The translations under genes were made by a program, and so were the position numbers. The notes below the pieces were generated by a model. It made no database searches and was not told where the DNA came from. It saw only the letters and a list, made by a program, of their open reading frames with translations. From positions 1 through 64,000 of IMG/VR virus record IMGVR_UViG_3300027736_001324: 64,000 nucleotides of DNA. One strand, 5' to 3'. This document shows positions 22,370 to 40,363 of this stretch, one piece after another; position 1 is the first letter of the stretch; every line of letters begins with the position of its first letter.

Positions 22370-23125
22370 TTACGCTTTTTTACAGTTGTCTCCGTGCCAT
22401 CTTGCGTAACCATTAACTGCTACCTGTTGATTACAATGTGGGCACAATTTCTTTTCACGCTTTGATCCCGTTAATGCTGCTATCTTCTTTGCGATTGTTT
22501 CAGGTGATTGTTTTCTTCCTATTGCTTTTTCTTTCATCTTTTGTTTAGTTTGCTCACTGTGAGTTTTATTGAACATTGGATTATTCTCACTGCGCTTTTT
22601 AACTGCCATTTTTTCTACCCATTCTGCTGAGAACGGGGAGCGTTTCTTTCCTAACTTGCTTTCTGATATTTTTTTGCGAGACTCTACTTTTTTTGCACCA
22701 TTTTTTTCTCCTAATACTGCTTCACGCTGTCTAGTATATCCTTCTTTACTACGATAAAATTTATCACCGTACATTGGATTATTTTCACCACTAAATCTTT
22801 CACTCTGTAATCTAGTATATTCTTCTTTTAGTTTTGCATATACTCTACTTGTTATTTTTGTATCGTATCGTTGTTGATTTTTATTCTCTGCTCTCATCAT
22901 TCTAAGAGCATTGAGCATCTTCCAATGTTCTTCACCGGTAGGATATATTTTTGTTAGTAACCAATGACACACAAAATGCTCTCTGGCTGTAATATAGATA
23001 AGATTAGATTCATTATCCGTTCCACCAAGACTTCTAGGCAATATGTGATGATGTTCGTAACCAGGAAGTTTTTCATGCTTACCGATCGCAACTATTTGAT
23101 TATACCATTTTTTATATTTGTTCAT
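22370..23125 (-). CDS. Free-standing HNH homing endonuclease with NUMOD3-like repeats and C-terminal Cys/His motif
   Basis: EHHHILPRSLGGTD...N...REHFVCH; NPMYG/NPMFNKTHSEQTK repeats; CPHC...HGDNC. Confidence 0.85.
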   Translation of the reverse strand: MNKYKKWYNQIVAIGKHEKLPGYEHHHILPRSLGGTDNESNLIYITAREHFVCHWLLTKIYPTGEEHWKMLNALRMMRAENKNQQRYDTKITSRVYAKLKEEYTRLQSERFSGENNPMYGDKFYRSKEGYTRQREAVLGEKNGAKKVESRKKISESKLGKKRSPFSAEWVEKMAVKKRSENNPMFNKTHSEQTKQKMKEKAIGRKQSPETIAKKIAALTGSKREKKLCPHCNQQVAVNGYARWHGDNCKKA

Positions 23126-35224: not shown

Positions 35225-35785
35225 TTATGTATTAATGGTTAAAAGGGAATCTTTGTTTTCTGTTGACTTGGTGTCTATTGTACTAGAATATGTTTTTAAT
35301 AAGTCTGTATTATGTAGGAAGAAACTATCAAATTCAAAAATCATCCAGTCTCCGTGTTTTTGAGATGTATAGTATGTGAAGTTATCCGCAACCCATGTTA
35401 GTTTGCTTTGTACACAAACATAGCGACCTTTACGGGTAATTTTAATAAATAAAATATTAATGTCATTTGTGTCCTCTACTGCTAGTAATTGTCCTAGCCA
35501 AGTATCTAATTGCTTACATTCCCCAGTAAGTAATAGATGAAACGGGAAGTCAGCATAATTTTTACACTCAGCATTGAAATGCGCCCAAGTGTCAGGTGGA
35601 GTTATATCACCCTTAAAAGATTTGGCTTGATTCCCGTCTAAAAAGTTCTTTCGATGTGAATTAGCGCCCCCAATATAAGCCCCTGAGTTTGGAACACGAA
35701 CAAATGGCTCCCCGTAAGTATCGCTGAGAAATTTTGCAATTTCTCTCTCATAAGAACTACCTTTTGTTTTACTTTTTGAAGTCAT
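35225..35785 (-). CDS. PD-(D/E)XK nuclease, Hjc-like Holliday junction resolvase
   Basis: KGSSYERE...RVPNSGA...GDI...AECK motif order. Confidence 0.75.
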   Translation of the reverse strand: MTSKSKTKGSSYEREIAKFLSDTYGEPFVRVPNSGAYIGGANSHRKNFLDGNQAKSFKGDITPPDTWAHFNAECKNYADFPFHLLLTGECKQLDTWLGQLLAVEDTNDINILFIKITRKGRYVCVQSKLTWVADNFTYYTSQKHGDWMIFEFDSFFLHNTDLLKTYSSTIDTKSTENKDSLLTINT

Positions 35786-35805
35786 GCTATTACTTATTAG
35801 ATTAT

Positions 35806-36549
35806 TCAGGCACTGATAAATTTACACTTGTCACCGTGAAACATTGTATAATGATTTTTTGCTATTGTCCGATTACAATGTTCACATACTTTTTGATTTT
35901 TTAGTTTCTTCATAGGATTATTTTCACCTGAGTTTTTTAATCTTGTCATTGCTTTATTGTAATCAGACGCAGGAATTCCATACATTGGATTTTTATCACC
36001 CCTCATTCGGTCAGACAATTTTGAATTTCCAGTGAGAGATTTGCTAATATTTTCATTATGAGAAGCTGGTCTATTTTTTGCATATTTTTGCACACCTATA
36101 CTCTGATTCTGTTTTCTAATATCATCATGCTTTTTCCCATAATGGGGAGACTTCTCTCTAACTTTACCATACATGGGATTTTTATTACCTGTTCTAGCTT
36201 TACTTTTACGTTGTCTAGTAATTGAATTTTCTTTAACACCGTACCGATTGTATAATCCGTCTCCGTTGTGTTGGTTAAAACTCATTGCATCATCTTTGGC
36301 ATTGAGTGATTTAAGAAGTACACGCTCTAACTCGGCAACATATCCTGCCTCGCCTATGTGTAATATTTCAAAAGTCCACTCATTTCTGTTTTTCAATATC
36401 ATTGGTTTGACTTCTTTACTGGAACATATATATTCTTCATGGCGTGATGGATTCCAACCGTTGCGTATTTTAGATCCAATATACCACCGTCCGGATGGAA
36501 TATGAATCCACTTATAGATATAAGGTATAGTTTTGTTATAAATAGTCAT
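35806..36549 (-). CDS. GIY-YIG-like (Seg-type) homing endonuclease with NUMOD3-like repeats
   Basis: YIYKW...WYIGS, later LE...FN; three NPM repeats; CEHC...HGDKC; AAGGAG SD. Confidence 0.75.
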   Translation of the reverse strand: MTIYNKTIPYIYKWIHIPSGRWYIGSKIRNGWNPSRHEEYICSSKEVKPMILKNRNEWTFEILHIGEAGYVAELERVLLKSLNAKDDAMSFNQHNGDGLYNRYGVKENSITRQRKSKARTGNKNPMYGKVREKSPHYGKKHDDIRKQNQSIGVQKYAKNRPASHNENISKSLTGNSKLSDRMRGDKNPMYGIPASDYNKAMTRLKNSGENNPMKKLKNQKVCEHCNRTIAKNHYTMFHGDKCKFISA

Positions 36550-36623
36550 GCTGGTGCTCCTTGTAAATGAATAGCATTAGAGTAGTCGGAGAGGTTAGAG
36601 ACTCGTGGACTACACTTTTATTT
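36550..36623 (+). ncRNA. Candidate cis-antisense small RNA to the endonuclease leader
   Basis: TATAAATA at 36537-36544 (+), two hairpins, then a T-rich end. Confidence 0.5.
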
Positions 36624-36627
36624 ATCA

Positions 36628-38391
36628 TTATTCTATGTTTACTGAGGTATCATACGTAGTAAAGCCATGCTCCTTAACTACACGAAGGACGTTAGGTACC
36701 CTATTTACTAATTCCTCCTTATGGGAAACAAGCCAGATTGATTTGTGTCTGCGGCGAGTCATCTCTTTTAGAATTGCAAGAGAATTCTCAACTCCAACAC
36801 CATCAGTGCCGTTATCTAATAGTTCGTCAATGAACAACAAATTGATTGGGGAATACAAGTTTTCCCAAACATCACGGAATGCCCAAGACAATGATAGAAT
36901 AACTCTATTCATTTCTCCCCTTGATAAATTATAGAAATCCATTTCACGACCCAATTCCGTAATCTCAACTTGTAAATCATTCTTAAATATTACTTGATGT
37001 GGCAATCCAATCTTATCTAAGTAATGTGTCAATCTACCATTCAAATATGATAGATTCTGGTCAATAATCTTTTTACGAACAAAGCTATCCTTGCTAGTTA
37101 AAATATCAAGCAAGAACTTTTGGTGTTCCATTGTGCGTGTCAATTGATTAATTCTGTCAAAGTTAATCTCTTGCAATGCTTGGTTCTCCATCTCTGAAAT
37201 CTGTTCACTATACGGATCAACTTCTTCGCCTTTACGTTCAATATCTTTAATAAGATTCTCAAGTTGGCTACTGTGTTTGATTGCTTGTGCTTCAGTATCA
37301 TAATGAGTAGTTGGCATTGCACCTAATGCACCCAAGTCCTTTAATGCTTGAGTATGTTCCATGAATTGTTTATTGATAGTTAAAACTTGAAATGCTGCTT
37401 CATGTGATGCTTTTATCTTCTCATCCAACACACTTTCATGCTTTTGATCATGGAACTCTTGACCACAAGCATAACATTTGTGGTCACGCAAATCACTAAT
37501 TTCTGTTGTTAGTTTATTAACTAATTTTTGTTCTTTGGCTTCGTCAGCTACACAACGAGCAATTAGTTTATTGAGGTCATCAATAGTCTTGCGCTTTTCA
37601 TTGTATGCTGTTAAATCTTTGTGAGCCTGTAATTCATTAGCAATATCAATAGTGATTAGTCTTTGATAATCAATAGCAAGACGTTCTAAATCTTCATCGT
37701 GCTTCATCTTCCACAATTTCTGTCTACGTTTAGTAGAATCAATTTGTTCTTTTACACGCTTATTGGCTTCCTCAATTGCTTTTACTTTGAATTCTTCTTG
37801 CTGAATATCATCTTTGCTATCTTTAACCAATCCCTTAATCACTTCTGCTTTTTCTGAAAGCAAGGTGATACCCAATAATTGTTCAATGATAGCACGTTGT
37901 TCATTATTTTTCAATGCAAGAAATGGTTCAGAATAGGTGTTAAGTGCCACGATATGTTTAAACATATCACTACTCATGTGGATCACTTTTTCAATCGCAG
38001 CTTGTGTTTCTTTGTTCTCGCCCTGTGCGTCATCCAATCCTTTTTGTAAATCACTATTTACATAGAATCGTAGGATGTTGGGCTTACGTCCACGTTCAAT
38101 CTTATAATCTATCCCATTAACACTAAACTCTAGTGTTACCATCATGTTTTTACCATTGGTACGATTAACTAGATTATCTTTACGAATACTGTTAATGGGA
38201 ACACCAAACAATGCATAACTCAATGCTTGGATGAGTGATGTTTTACCCGTACCATTACGAGCGCCATCACCACCTAAGTCTAGATTTTCACCTAGAATAA
38301 GTGTTAGTTCCTGTCTGTCAAAGTTGACTGCTTGTGTTACTTGTCCGATTGATAAAAAATTACGGAGGGTGATATTCTTCAGAGTTATCAT
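36628..38391 (-). CDS. gp46: Rad50/SbcC-like recombination ATPase
   Basis: Walker A NGTGKTS, zinc hook CYAC, signature LSRGE, Walker B LLFIDE. Confidence 0.95.
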   Translation of the reverse strand: MITLKNITLRNFLSIGQVTQAVNFDRQELTLILGENLDLGGDGARNGTGKTSLIQALSYALFGVPINSIRKDNLVNRTNGKNMMVTLEFSVNGIDYKIERGRKPNILRFYVNSDLQKGLDDAQGENKETQAAIEKVIHMSSDMFKHIVALNTYSEPFLALKNNEQRAIIEQLLGITLLSEKAEVIKGLVKDSKDDIQQEEFKVKAIEEANKRVKEQIDSTKRRQKLWKMKHDEDLERLAIDYQRLITIDIANELQAHKDLTAYNEKRKTIDDLNKLIARCVADEAKEQKLVNKLTTEISDLRDHKCYACGQEFHDQKHESVLDEKIKASHEAAFQVLTINKQFMEHTQALKDLGALGAMPTTHYDTEAQAIKHSSQLENLIKDIERKGEEVDPYSEQISEMENQALQEINFDRINQLTRTMEHQKFLLDILTSKDSFVRKKIIDQNLSYLNGRLTHYLDKIGLPHQVIFKNDLQVEITELGREMDFYNLSRGEMNRVILSLSWAFRDVWENLYSPINLLFIDELLDNGTDGVGVENSLAILKEMTRRRHKSIWLVSHKEELVNRVPNVLRVVKEHGFTTYDTSVNIE

Positions 38392-39401
38392 AGATTGTTA
38401 TAAATTTCCAAGAGTATTCGTTTATCAAAGCTATTGCTTTCAATGCTATTGATTTGGTCAATAATGATTTGGTCTACTGATTCAAACTTCAAATCACCGC
38501 GCCCCTCTTGCTCAACTTGGTCTACTTTCATTGGTATCAATGCCATCTCTCTTAGTTTATGTTCTGGAATTAATGTTTCACGTATGAAGTTAGCTTCTTC
38601 ATATGAAATATCAATGTCAAGATGCACTCTAACATGACTATCAGGTAATAGCAATCCCTTTGGATTTTCTAATATATCGCTTAACTTGTGAACACGATAC
38701 AGTGGTTGTTTAGGCCAACTATGAAAGATTGGGTCTTGTCCCCATTCCATTACCATCATACCACGTGCATCATCTTGTGCATCAGCATAGTTATGTGGGA
38801 AACTATTGCCAATGTACCAAACATTAGCACGGCTTTGTCGTTTATGAAAATGCCCACTAAAGACATAATCAAAATCTTTCATATGATCGGTATTAATTTC
38901 ACCGTGATCGGGCATCTCTACCATAGCATTCATATAGAATCTTGGCAATTCAAAATGTCCAAACATATATTTGCCACTTAGTTTCTGAACCTTTTTGTAA
39001 TCATCCTGTACAAGCCATGGTGCAATTACTACATCTCCTTCGGTGAAGAAGTCGTTGACAATTTGTACGTTTGGTAAATGTTTAGCCCACTCAACACTAT
39101 GAATGTCCCTGCGGTCACGATAATAAAGGTCATGATTGCCCGGTATAAAATATACCCTATCAAAGTTATCATTTAGTTTCTCCAATGCTTGTAATCCAAA
39201 CTGTAGTGTGTGAATATTGATACTTGCTCTGTGATGATTATAATCACCCAAGAAAAAACAAGTTTCACACCCTTCACTTTTAGCTTTGGTTATAAACCAA
39301 TCTACAAAATTATTGCAGTCATGGTTATGCTGTAAGCTATTTGACTTAAGACCAAAATGAATATCGGTGAATACAGCGGCTTTTTTAAAAAGGTTAGTCA
39401 T
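38388..39401 (-). CDS. gp47: Mre11/SbcD-like nuclease; start revised to 39401
   Basis: DIHFG, LGD, GNHD, GHFH metallophosphoesterase motifs; ATGA overlap with gp46. Confidence 0.95.
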   Translation of the reverse strand: MTNLFKKAAVFTDIHFGLKSNSLQHNHDCNNFVDWFITKAKSEGCETCFFLGDYNHHRASINIHTLQFGLQALEKLNDNFDRVYFIPGNHDLYYRDRRDIHSVEWAKHLPNVQIVNDFFTEGDVVIAPWLVQDDYKKVQKLSGKYMFGHFELPRFYMNAMVEMPDHGEINTDHMKDFDYVFSGHFHKRQSRANVWYIGNSFPHNYADAQDDARGMMVMEWGQDPIFHSWPKQPLYRVHKLSDILENPKGLLLPDSHVRVHLDIDISYEEANFIRETLIPEHKLREMALIPMKVDQVEQEGRGDLKFESVDQIIIDQINSIESNSFDKRILLEIYNNL

Positions 39402-39418
39402 TCTTATATTGTATAATA

Positions 39419-39444
39419 AATGATGTTGCCGTAGCAACATCATT
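39419..39444 (-). promoter_or_regulatory. 11-bp hairpin with cTACGg loop, overlapping a possible sigma70-like promoter (TTGCTA-18-TACAAT)
   Basis: Minus strand AATGATGTTGC-TACG-GCAACATCATT between gp55 and gp47. Confidence 0.55.
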
Positions 39445-39451
39445 GGATAAA

Positions 39452-40363
39452 TTATTCTTCGTAAACTACCGAACTCATGCCAGCACCCAGACCTTGACGA
39501 GTCCAGCTTGGGTTAAGTCCATTAATCTCTAAGATATCATCACGTATATTTTGATTACGCTTTTCCGTATTTAATACACGACAGAAACTATTTGTTATAG
39601 CTGCGGTGTAATAAGCGAATGGGTTGGCTGATTTAGCTTCGTTGAAACGTAATCCAACGTAGGTAAGTTGCAGAATAGCGGAGTTCCGCATCTCATCGTT
39701 GTAAGTATACCCACGCCAATTGTATTTCATGGCATATTTTTCGCACATCATAATATACATACGGGCAAGTTTGTTTGTTACTTGTCCATGATCCTTACTG
39801 AATTCTCCAGAATTTAGATCACCTTTCCAATGACTTTTGCCCACGCAATAAAAAGTATTATTTTTATCAATCATATAATGTTGGAATGGGGGGAAGTTTA
39901 CTTTGACATGAACCATATCATCTACTTCAGCTTTGGTTGTCACATCCTCTAAGTCAGCAAAGATTTCATCTGGGTCAGCTTCTTCAAATTCAAAGATATC
40001 TTTTGCTGTTTTCTTTTTAACTGTTTTGCGGGGGACTTTTGGTGCTACTGGTACATGATCCCAATTCATTACTCTAAATATTAAATCTGTTACTGGGATA
40101 GATTCTGGGCTAACTGCGTCTTTTGAGCCTTGTTCCAAGCTAAGACGTAATGCTCTTGTTTCTTTAGCTTGTTGAATTGTTTCAGGTTTGAATGCGTATT
40201 CTAAACTTTCTTCAATAGAAGATTGGGGCATATCCACGATGAAATCATACCTATGATATTCGGGTTTAGCAAAATGACAGTATGCGTTTTTGCTTTCATG
40301 TATCTCTTTTAAGATATCTTTGTTATTTAAATAGTTGACAGGTTTTCTTGAGGGTAATGACAT
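39452..40363 (-). CDS. gp55: Late-transcription sigma factor, gp55-like
   Basis: YLNNKD, NWRGYTYNDEM, NPFAYYT...F motifs; 55-47-46 gene order. Confidence 0.85.
   Translation of the reverse strand: MSLPSRKPVNYLNNKDILKEIHESKNAYCHFAKPEYHRYDFIVDMPQSSIEESLEYAFKPETIQQAKETRALRLSLEQGSKDAVSPESIPVTDLIFRVMNWDHVPVAPKVPRKTVKKKTAKDIFEFEEADPDEIFADLEDVTTKAEVDDMVHVKVNFPPFQHYMIDKNNTFYCVGKSHWKGDLNSGEFSKDHGQVTNKLARMYIMMCEKYAMKYNWRGYTYNDEMRNSAILQLTYVGLRFNEAKSANPFAYYTAAITNSFCRVLNTEKRNQNIRDDILEINGLNPSWTRQGLGAGMSSVVYEE

Follow-up and report, generated by a model that had tools for sequence, protein, structure and literature searches.

Homing endonucleases of T4-like phages are known to be regulated. The genes for I-TevI, I-TevII, I-TevIII, segB and Aeh1 mobE combine a late promoter with a hairpin that sequesters the ribosome binding site (PMC2988022); this structure forms in the sense RNA, and only in transcripts that start upstream. 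In cyanophage S-PM2, a T4-like phage, the antisense RNA CfrI runs opposite a homing endonuclease gene and is co-expressed with it (Millard et al. 2010, as described in PMC2984593). CfrI is about 225 nt long, bridges psbA and the endonuclease gene, and is a single case of unknown function. PeSL (promoter-early stem-loop) cassettes of T4-type phages combine a terminator with an early promoter; these short conserved modules flank variable ORFs and can serve as points of exchange between unrelated genes (PMC2839356, PMC4122927). Outside of phages, the transposase of IS10/Tn10 appears to be controlled by RNA-OUT, a stably folded antisense RNA of ~70 nt, which would be made from a promoter inside the 5' end of the gene that points outward and faces the gene's own promoter, and which would be complementary to the 5' end of the mRNA (RNA-IN), including the ribosome binding site. 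Type I toxin-antitoxin pairs such as hok/sok likewise seem to use a cis-encoded antisense RNA that overlaps the translation initiation region of an mRNA for a potentially harmful protein.

We analysed a stretch of 64,000 nucleotides (the window; positions 1 to 64,000 of IMG/VR record IMGVR_UViG_3300027736_001324) that contains a homing endonuclease gene preceded by a 78-base spacer. The initial annotation proposed that the first codons of this gene embed a late promoter on the opposite strand, facing the gene's own promoter, and that the resulting RNA is either a cis-antisense RNA limiting translation of the nuclease or an RNA cofactor that travels with it. Each of the sequence elements that it described is present, and the parts of the locus are as follows.

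35225..35785: downstream PDDEXK gene
35791..35797 (-): ATAAGTA box 5 nt before the ATG of the PDDEXK gene; part of the recipient backbone, marking the right edge of the insertion
35806..36549 (-): homing endonuclease ORF, 247 aa, with YIY...YIG motifs, NUMOD3 repeats and a C-terminal Cys/His cluster
36537..36544 (+): antisense late-promoter-type box TATAAATA, embedded in codons 2-5 (ACT ATT TAT A) of the endonuclease ORF
36550 (+): predicted 5' end of the antisense RNA, a G, the 6th nt after the box and 1 nt before hairpin 1
36551..36580 (+): hairpin 1, pairing CTGGTGCT (36551-58) with AGCATTAG (36573-80), with two G-U pairs that exist only on this strand; the loop is 36559-72
36557..36562 (-): Shine-Dalgarno sequence AAGGAG of the endonuclease mRNA, 7 nt before the ATG; its complement, CTCCTT on the + strand, lies in the stem and loop of hairpin 1
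36582..36613 (+): hairpin 2, with an outer stem pairing GTAGTC (36582-87) with GACTAC (36608-13), a bulged G at 36588, an inner GAG/CTC stem (36589-91 with 36602-04) and a conserved GYG bulge (GUG, 36605-07); ACTTTTATTTAT follows
36613 (-): predicted 5' end of the late sense mRNA, the G that opens the sense copy of hairpin 2, 6th nt after the sense box
36614..36625 (+): AC followed by the U-rich tract UUUUAUUUAU, a possible intrinsic-terminator tail and the likely 3' end of the antisense RNA; also the complement of the sense promoter box plus the three A's that follow it
36619..36626 (-): the endonuclease gene's own late promoter box GATAAATA, with its TAAATA core at 36624..36619, 1 nt after the stop codon of the gp46-like gene
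36628..38391 (-): upstream neighbor, a gp46-like SbcC-type nuclease subunit

The endonuclease ORF matched Pfam NUMOD3 (4.5e-10) and phrog_655, annotated as homing endonuclease (2e-4), and was 25-27% identical over 96% of its length to annotated GIY-YIG homing endonucleases of Klebsiella and Yersinia T4-like phages. The YIY (residues 10-12) and YIG (23-25) motifs are invariant in 6 orthologues; however, Pfam returned NUMOD3 only, a PDB profile search found no relative, and an AlphaFold model from a 6-sequence alignment had a pLDDT of 52.5, too poor for a fold search. We refer to the protein as GIY-YIG-like. The gp46-like neighbor matched phrog_77 (5e-99).

Within the window alone, the arrangement is not beyond chance. 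TATAAATA occurs 6 times, against 12.0 +/- 3.0 in shuffles, and the fold z-scores are -1.64 on the + strand and -1.51 on the - strand. The possibility that an A/T-rich genome and the peptide M-T-I-Y produced TATAAATA by chance next to ordinary leader hairpins is, however, refuted by the comparison with related sequences. The segment 36537-36626 (+) is one copy of an ~80-nt module and matches the covariance model of the family at 74 bits (E about 1e-13). The module was found in more than 100 unique copies in uncultured freshwater phage contigs; copy numbers are 13, 12, 7, 5, and 4 in five other phage records, whereas no further copy was found in the window's own genome. A search of 36300-36900 against Rfam 15 returned only two chance-level snoRNA matches (15.9 and 17.6 bits, against gathering scores of 40 and 54). 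Megablast, blastn, and tblastn searches against INPHARED found no cultured relative with the module, and the S-PM2 genome (AJ630128) contained no match to its model at E up to 10, although the same model finds the window's own copy at 4e-14.

The module always sits in front of a homing endonuclease ORF. The same leader and the same first codons precede 27 ORF clusters, which include HNH_3 (6e-11), HNH+NUMOD3, and GIY-YIG-like proteins, and the module also occurs in other genomic contexts. About 20 relatives have an empty spacer between gp46 and PDDEXK. In these, the same (G)ATAAGTA box lies 7 nt before the ATG and the box GATAAATA is absent; these empty sites show that both boxes of the cassette arrive with it.

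In this genome, ATAAATA and CTAAATA are the most enriched upstream words, with ATAAATA enriched 12-fold upstream of genes. GATAAATA is the most enriched upstream 8-mer, with 26 of 34 copies within 70 nt upstream of an ATG. These words precede the T4-like portal gene and a gp25-like baseplate gene, and a gp55-like late sigma factor is encoded at 39452..40363 (phrog_12791, 3e-73). The endonuclease gene's own box thus has the identity of a T4-type late promoter at the level of the motif. It is kept in 76 of 80 cassettes that were selected without it, and its distance to the stem of hairpin 2 is constant across the family. In contrast, TATAAATA is a minority promoter form; only 4 of the genome's 17 copies lie upstream of a gene, the preferred word being GATAAATA/ACTAAATA.

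To determine whether the embedded box is conserved as nucleotides or as protein, we examined codon usage in 95 leaders. Because a first pattern scan was biased towards the ORF start, the conservation figures were taken from a second scan that did not include the ORF. Codon 2 changes its amino acid but ends in T in 86 of 95 leaders (p 2e-29), Ile is ATT in 53 of 57 (p 4e-20), against 35% at later Ile codons, and Tyr is TAT in 64 of 70 (p 1e-6). TATTTA lies within the first 12 nt of the ORF in 74 of 95 leaders and occurs in all three reading frames, at ORF offsets +5 (53 leaders), +3 (15), +4 (5), and +6 (1). The spacer before the ATG lengthens to compensate, so that the box stays 5-6 nt from hairpin 1. 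The remaining 21 leaders lack TATTTA, yet they keep the antisense-specific pairing; either variant boxes still work, or the box is not the only source of the RNA. The variant boxes seen (ATAAGTA, GTAAATA, ATATATA) are exactly the one-mismatch words that are mildly enriched upstream of genes in this genome (12-13%, against 3-7% for other one-mismatch words). The predicted start at G36550 is inferred from T4-type geometry and from this genome's leaderless late genes, where the ATG lies 4-7 nt after the box; this column is G in at least 90% of copies and A in most of the rest.

Both hairpins covary strongly. In a MAFFT alignment of 89 copies, 97.2% of cells are standard pairs on the + strand and the covariation score is 0.525, against 0.181 in shuffles (0 of 500 reach it); slid controls give 30-47%. 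A model-based alignment of 78 distinct copies gives 98.9% and 0.638, with 13 pairs showing compensatory changes; shuffles overall score 0.18-0.19. About 170 cells are G-U on the + strand, that is A-C on the gene's strand, and almost none go the other way. In a strand-neutral count, hairpin 1 has 567 Watson-Crick cells, 164 that are G-U on the antisense strand only, and 0 that are G-U on the gene's strand only; its position 5 reads U-G 51, U-A 28, and C-G 11. The outer stem of hairpin 2 is 100% paired on the + strand, all 6 pairs show compensatory changes, and its G-U cells are 29 antisense-only against 1 sense-only. On the gene's strand 86.5% of cells pair, and 0 of 89 copies are fully paired there, against 58 of 89 on the + strand. 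The mean fold energy is -17.1 kcal/mol on the antisense strand and -12.4 on the sense strand, the antisense strand being more stable in 84 of 92 copies; in the window the values are -22.6 and -10.8. The nucleotide-level conservation of the I-Y codons and the covariation in favor of the antisense strand both agree with the initial annotation.

These data bear on the possibility of sense-strand control of the I-TevI/segB/mobE type, the established paradigm for T4 and Aeh1 endonucleases (PMC2988022). In read-through transcripts from the gp46-like gene, the RNA copy of the promoter box (AUAAAUA, 36625..36619) would pair with UAUUUAU in codons 2-4 and close a three-way junction around the ribosome binding site, whereas late transcripts start inside the junction and would escape and be translated; TATAAATA on the + strand would then be only a by-product of this complementarity. 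The minimum-energy fold and the centroid of the minus strand contain this 7-bp helix, both boxes keep fixed distances to the hairpins, and some lineages (numbered L015, L020, L033, L034, and L041 among our leaders) extend the helix to 8-11 bp. However, the helix does not covary: when the sense box is CTAAATA (16 leaders), the base after TATTTA is T 11, C 4, A 1, and never G, and by our count the flanking positions pair at about the chance rate. The two hairpins that would form the junction are selected on the other strand, the sense leader carries A-C mismatches in the stem, and a 6-7 bp helix made only of A-U pairs closing a 70-nt multiloop is weak. We consider this explanation unlikely, although the leader shares with the T4 and Aeh1 systems a structure around the Shine-Dalgarno sequence and, presumably, the aim of restricting nuclease output.

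The proposed terminator is only moderately supported. The three nucleotides after the sense box are A-rich in cassettes (A 63-68%, AAA in 41 of 119), against 32-42% at other late promoters of this genome. However, the stem base is A-U-rich, a 2-nt gap precedes the U-run, a simple terminator scan did not call it, and the U-run is poor in some lineages (ACCCAUUUAUC in L020). It is possible, though doubtful, that the conserved + strand structure is not an independently initiated small RNA. It could act as a terminator or insulator for antisense transcription entering the cassette, in single-stranded DNA during replication or recombination-dependent homing, or mainly as a recombination handle like the PeSL cassettes, with TATTTA kept for another reason, such as an A/U-rich translation start. 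Hairpin 2 plus a U-rich tail resembles a terminator, the pairing persists in the leaders without TATTTA, the structure would also form in single-stranded DNA of that strand, where G-T wobbles are tolerated in hairpins, and the shared leader joins unrelated ORFs, as PeSL motifs do (PMC4122927, PMC2839356). On the other hand, a recombination handle or an A/U-rich start does not explain compensatory changes or a fixed spacing between box and hairpin 1 across reading frames. Hairpin 1 has no terminator features, yet it is the more strand-asymmetric of the two, and the box matches promoter words of the genome, with a purine at the predicted start. The module differs from PeSL cassettes in having late-type boxes on both strands, reaching into the first codons, and being specific to endonuclease ORFs; no sigma-70-type promoter was called in 36537-36630.

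The second proposal of the initial annotation, an RNA cofactor or guide that travels with the nuclease, is very unlikely. The module is strictly linked to endonuclease ORFs, and nuclease-associated RNAs may have precedents in other mobile elements, such as the omega RNAs of IscB/TnpB. However, the same module serves HNH and GIY-YIG-like/NUMOD3 proteins, which have unrelated catalytic folds; the variable parts of the RNA are stems that covary, not a free guide-like segment; and its only long complementarity is to its own gene's leader. The NUMOD3 repeats and the zinc-finger-like DNA-binding part of the protein are typical of protein-only target recognition.

With reasonable though not full confidence, we interpret the spacer as the control region of a portable homing-endonuclease cassette, bounded by two facing late-type promoter boxes. 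GATAAATA would start the endonuclease mRNA at about 36613, and TATAAATA would start a small RNA at G36550 that folds into two hairpins and probably ends in the U-rich tract 36616-25, giving about 65-75 nt. Transcription of the + strand from the embedded box, the end of that RNA, and repression are inferred; four RNA-labelled sequencing runs contained only 90-95% relatives of the flanking gp46, gp47, and PDDEXK genes, as unstranded contigs with zero depth over 35536-36741. The RNA would be perfectly complementary to the whole 64-nt 5' UTR of the late mRNA (36550-36613), presenting the complement of the Shine-Dalgarno sequence in the loop of hairpin 1. By pairing with the leader, and possibly also through collision of the converging polymerases, it would block ribosome binding and/or create a duplex for RNase III, and this would cap nuclease output when phage genomes and cassette copies are many. 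Sense and antisense transcripts would both be late, so the benefit of producing both together is not obvious.

This logic is that of RNA-OUT/RNA-IN, and it suits copy-number-dependent (multicopy) inhibition, given up to 13 cassette copies per genome and many genome copies late in infection. In comparison with what appears to hold for IS10, the promoters are of the phage late (gp55) type rather than sigma-70, there are two hairpins and not one, the overlap covers the whole 5' UTR and stops 1 nt before the AUG, the protein is a homing endonuclease and not a transposase, and there is no sequence relation. In comparison with CfrI, the module is ~80 nt, multi-copy, and shared by many endonuclease families. 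The type I antitoxin likeness suggested by the initial annotation is an analogy and not membership, since the protein is a 247-aa NUMOD3 nuclease and not a small membrane peptide, and the setting is a lytic phage. More speculatively, because the leaders are so alike (UUAGAG, often an identical hairpin 2), antisense RNAs from one copy could act in trans on the mRNAs of other copies, or on the cassettes of a co-infecting relative, making the module a shared governor for all homing endonuclease cassettes of a phage, with copy-number sensing and cross-talk or competition between selfish elements. The RNA, which shows a 16S-like CCUCC loop, might also have an additional role beyond its own gene.

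Regulation of phage homing endonucleases has so far been explained by sense-strand RBS hairpins, choice of promoter, and autorepression (PMC2988022). A conserved, portable antisense-RNA module, shared by HNH and GIY-YIG-like genes and present in many copies per genome, would add a fourth mechanism and would link homing endonucleases mechanistically to transposon copy-number control. It would also define a new, abundant structured RNA family in uncultured freshwater jumbo phages, absent from Rfam, that can now be searched with a model. It shows that the first four codons of these genes are dictated by a nucleic-acid signal rather than by the protein.

The window is the first 64 kb of a 263.7-kb IMG/VR record of an uncultured freshwater phage, estimated to be 69% complete. 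The phage is T4-like; in addition to the genes listed below, it has a T4-like portal gene and a gp25-like baseplate gene. The region of interest is the 78-nt spacer between the gp46-like gene and a 247-aa homing endonuclease ORF. This ORF had matches to Pfam NUMOD3 and to phrog_655, and is 25-27% identical to annotated GIY-YIG endonucleases of Klebsiella and Yersinia phages; its membership in the GIY-YIG family is likely but unproven. The following features are referred to in the analyses:

35806..36549, minus strand: homing endonuclease ORF
36626..36619, minus strand: the endonuclease gene's own (sense) box, a perfect GATAAATA
36628..38391: gp46/SbcC-like gene
38388..39443: gp47/SbcD-like gene
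39452..40363: gp55-type late sigma factor (phrog_12791, 3e-73)

All of the sequence elements described in the initial annotation, including the box embedded in the first codons of the endonuclease gene and the two hairpins, are present where that annotation placed them. However, taken alone they are unremarkable. TATAAATA occurs 6 times in the window against 12 expected, and 17 times in 264 kb against 28 for the reversed word; this word is thus under-represented. The late-promoter words of this genome are GATAAATA, for which 26 of 34 copies are located within 70 nt upstream of an ATG, and ACTAAATA (15 of 25), whereas only 4 of 17 copies of TATAAATA are upstream. The folds of either strand have z-scores of about -1.5 to -1.6.

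Thirteen orthologous loci at 63-100% protein identity keep the order gp46, spacer, endonuclease. These loci also retain the sense box, both hairpins with compensatory changes, and ATT TAT at codons 3-4. A metagenome scan added lineages in which the same leader and ORF start are located in a different genomic context (loci L039 and L041). In addition, a 1271-nt contig from sequencing run X21 matched only 53 bases of the window (36573-36625, hairpin 2 plus the sense box); the module therefore occurs in yet another context in that sample. In contrast, a 55%-identical orthologous endonuclease located after gp46 (loci L037:1330-1500, L038, and L044) has a different leader, in which AATAAATA overlaps the gp46 stop codon and the sense leader contains CCUCCUUCC; there is no M-x-I-Y start and no antisense box. 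A second homing endonuclease gene in the window (22373-23125, minus strand; NUMOD3 5e-15, phrog_655 5e-45) has CATAAATA 5 nt before its ATG and no leader module.

The spacer is therefore one copy of a widespread module, which consists of a late-type box, 3-5 nt, hairpin 2, UCUAA, hairpin 1 with the Shine-Dalgarno sequence in its loop and 3' arm, 5-6 nt containing the ATG, and TATTTA. A covariance model of the module (R1) found the window copy at 74 bits and no other copy in its genome. The same model found 13, 12, 7, 5, and 4 copies in five other phage records of 139-361 kb. In one of the copies in genome G002 (locus L306, G002:89110-90346), the module is intact but the ORF behind it is cut to 30 aa; this looks like a decaying cassette whose RNA module is still conserved.

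To determine on which strand the structure is selected, we aligned the arms of the hairpins with a strand-neutral rule that maximized Watson-Crick pairs only. Hairpin 1 in 92 leaders has 567 Watson-Crick cells, 164 cells that are A-C on the gene strand (G-U on the window + strand), 0 cells that are G-U on the gene strand, and 5 others. At position 5 the + strand reads U-G 51, U-A 28, and C-G 11, which is the classical path of an RNA helix. The outer stem of hairpin 2 has 29 antisense-only G-U cells against 1 sense-only. Pair counting on alignments gave matching figures for the + strand: 97.2% standard pairs and a covariation score of 0.525 on the MAFFT alignment, against 0.181 in shuffles (0 of 500 reach the observed score) and with slid controls giving 30-47%, and 98.9% and 0.638 on the model-based alignment. 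Read on the gene strand, only 86.5% of cells pair, and none of 89 copies is fully paired there, against 58 on the + strand. These counts treat the sequences as independent; however, antisense-only G-U pairs occur in at least 7 distinct stem contexts among the 29 hairpin 1 arm types. Predicted stability agrees: the mean is -17.1 kcal/mol on the antisense strand and -12.4 on the sense strand, the antisense strand is more stable in 84 of 92 copies, and in the window the values are -22.6 and -10.8. The structure is therefore selected on the strand opposite the endonuclease gene, as the initial annotation had inferred from two G-U pairs. Chance is excluded.

Our first alternative was the T4 paradigm, in which a sense hairpin hides the RBS in read-through transcripts (PMC2988022), because the minus-strand fold pairs the promoter box with codons 2-4. 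This alternative fails on covariation, as the partner base is never G when the sense box is CTAAATA; it also fails on the strand of the hairpins.

Conservation of the embedded box was assessed in 95 leaders with canonical geometry, taken from the scan that did not include the ORF. Codon 2 encodes T, S, Y, N, I, D, C, or L, but ends in T in 86 of 95, whereas later codons have 35% T at the third position (p 2e-29). Ile at codon 3 is ATT in 53 of 57, against 35% later (p 4e-20), and Tyr at codon 4 is TAT in 64 of 70, against 67% later. TATTTA occurs at ORF offsets +5 (53 leaders), +3 (15), +4 (5), and +6 (1), that is, in all three frames. The spacer between hairpin 1 and the ATG lengthens by 1-2 nt when the box is closer to the ATG; the box therefore stays 5-6 nt from the hairpin. 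The same four-codon start precedes proteins of unrelated folds in 27 clusters, including HNH_3 (6e-11), HNH+NUMOD3, NUMOD3-only, and GIY-YIG-like proteins. The signal is nucleic acid, not protein. Given these unrelated nuclease folds, the possibility that the RNA is a cofactor of the nuclease, which the initial annotation had also raised, is unlikely.

The predicted start of the antisense RNA, the 5th-6th nt after the box, is a G in at least 90% of copies and lies 1 nt before hairpin 1. This geometry matches the many late genes of this genome whose ATG lies 4-7 nt after the box (for example GATAAATAcattATG; in the window, e.g., 27383, 23131, 17994, and 22357, all on the minus strand), which implies leaderless or near-leaderless late mRNAs in this phage. 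TATTTA is lacking in 21 of 95 leaders, most of which have ATAAGTA or ATATATA instead, and a further 15 leaders that do keep TATTTA read GTAAATA at the 7-mer level. These three words are exactly the one-mismatch words that are mildly enriched upstream of genes in this genome (12-13% against 3-7%), so they may be weaker late-promoter variants. (G)ATAAGTA is conserved 5-7 nt before the ATG of the neighboring PDDEXK gene in many relatives.

The sense box is kept in 76 of 80 cassettes that were selected without it, at a fixed distance from hairpin 2. The spacer between the gp46-like and PDDEXK genes (35786-36627 in the window; loci L247-L296) is an insertion hot spot: about 20 relatives have an empty spacer of 33-38 nt, while others carry inserts of 359, about 680-710, about 840-910, or 1666-1904 nt. 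Comparison with the empty sites shows that the insertion starts 1 nt after the gp46 stop codon, with the G of GATAAATA, and ends between the endonuclease stop codon (35806) and the ATAAGTA box of the backbone (35797..35791, minus strand). Both promoter boxes therefore arrive with the cassette. In several copies in G002 (loci L298, L300, L305, L307, and L308), TGTCAAG lies 6-7 nt before the sense box. On the other strand this reads CTTGACA, the early-promoter-like word enriched upstream of genes in the genome of the phage studied here, and it may be a further outward-facing promoter at the cassette edge.

On the + strand, hairpin 2 is followed by AC and then UUUUAUUUAU. The three bases after the sense box are A-rich in cassettes (A is 63-68%, and AAA occurs in 41 of 119), whereas at other late promoters of this genome A is 32-42% and C is common. 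This fits selection for a U-run on the other strand. However, the evidence is moderate, as a simple scan did not call a terminator and some lineages have a poor U-run. A role purely as a terminator or insulator, a role in single-stranded DNA, or a role as a PeSL-like recombination handle (PMC4122927) cannot be excluded; none of these explains the fixed spacing between box and hairpin or the strand asymmetry of hairpin 1.

Rfam 15 has no such family, and INPHARED phages have no copy by blastn. The only antisense RNA reported opposite a homing endonuclease in a T4-like phage is CfrI of S-PM2 (PMC2984593); it is 225 nt, and the genome of S-PM2 has no match to R1. Our literature searches found no description of this module.

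The most likely reading is that the module encodes a cis-antisense RNA of about 65-75 nt, spanning 36550 to about 36620, made from a promoter that faces the gene's own promoter. Transcription from the embedded box, the 3' end, and repression are inferred without transcript data; the four RNA-labelled runs contain only relatives that lack the cassette. The predicted RNA covers the entire late 5' UTR (36613..36550) and shows the anti-Shine-Dalgarno sequence in a loop. Its effects would be a block of ribosome binding, a duplex substrate for RNase III, and possibly polymerase collision. This appears to be the design of IS10 RNA-OUT/RNA-IN, and it suits a selfish nuclease present in many copies per genome, with many genomes per cell.
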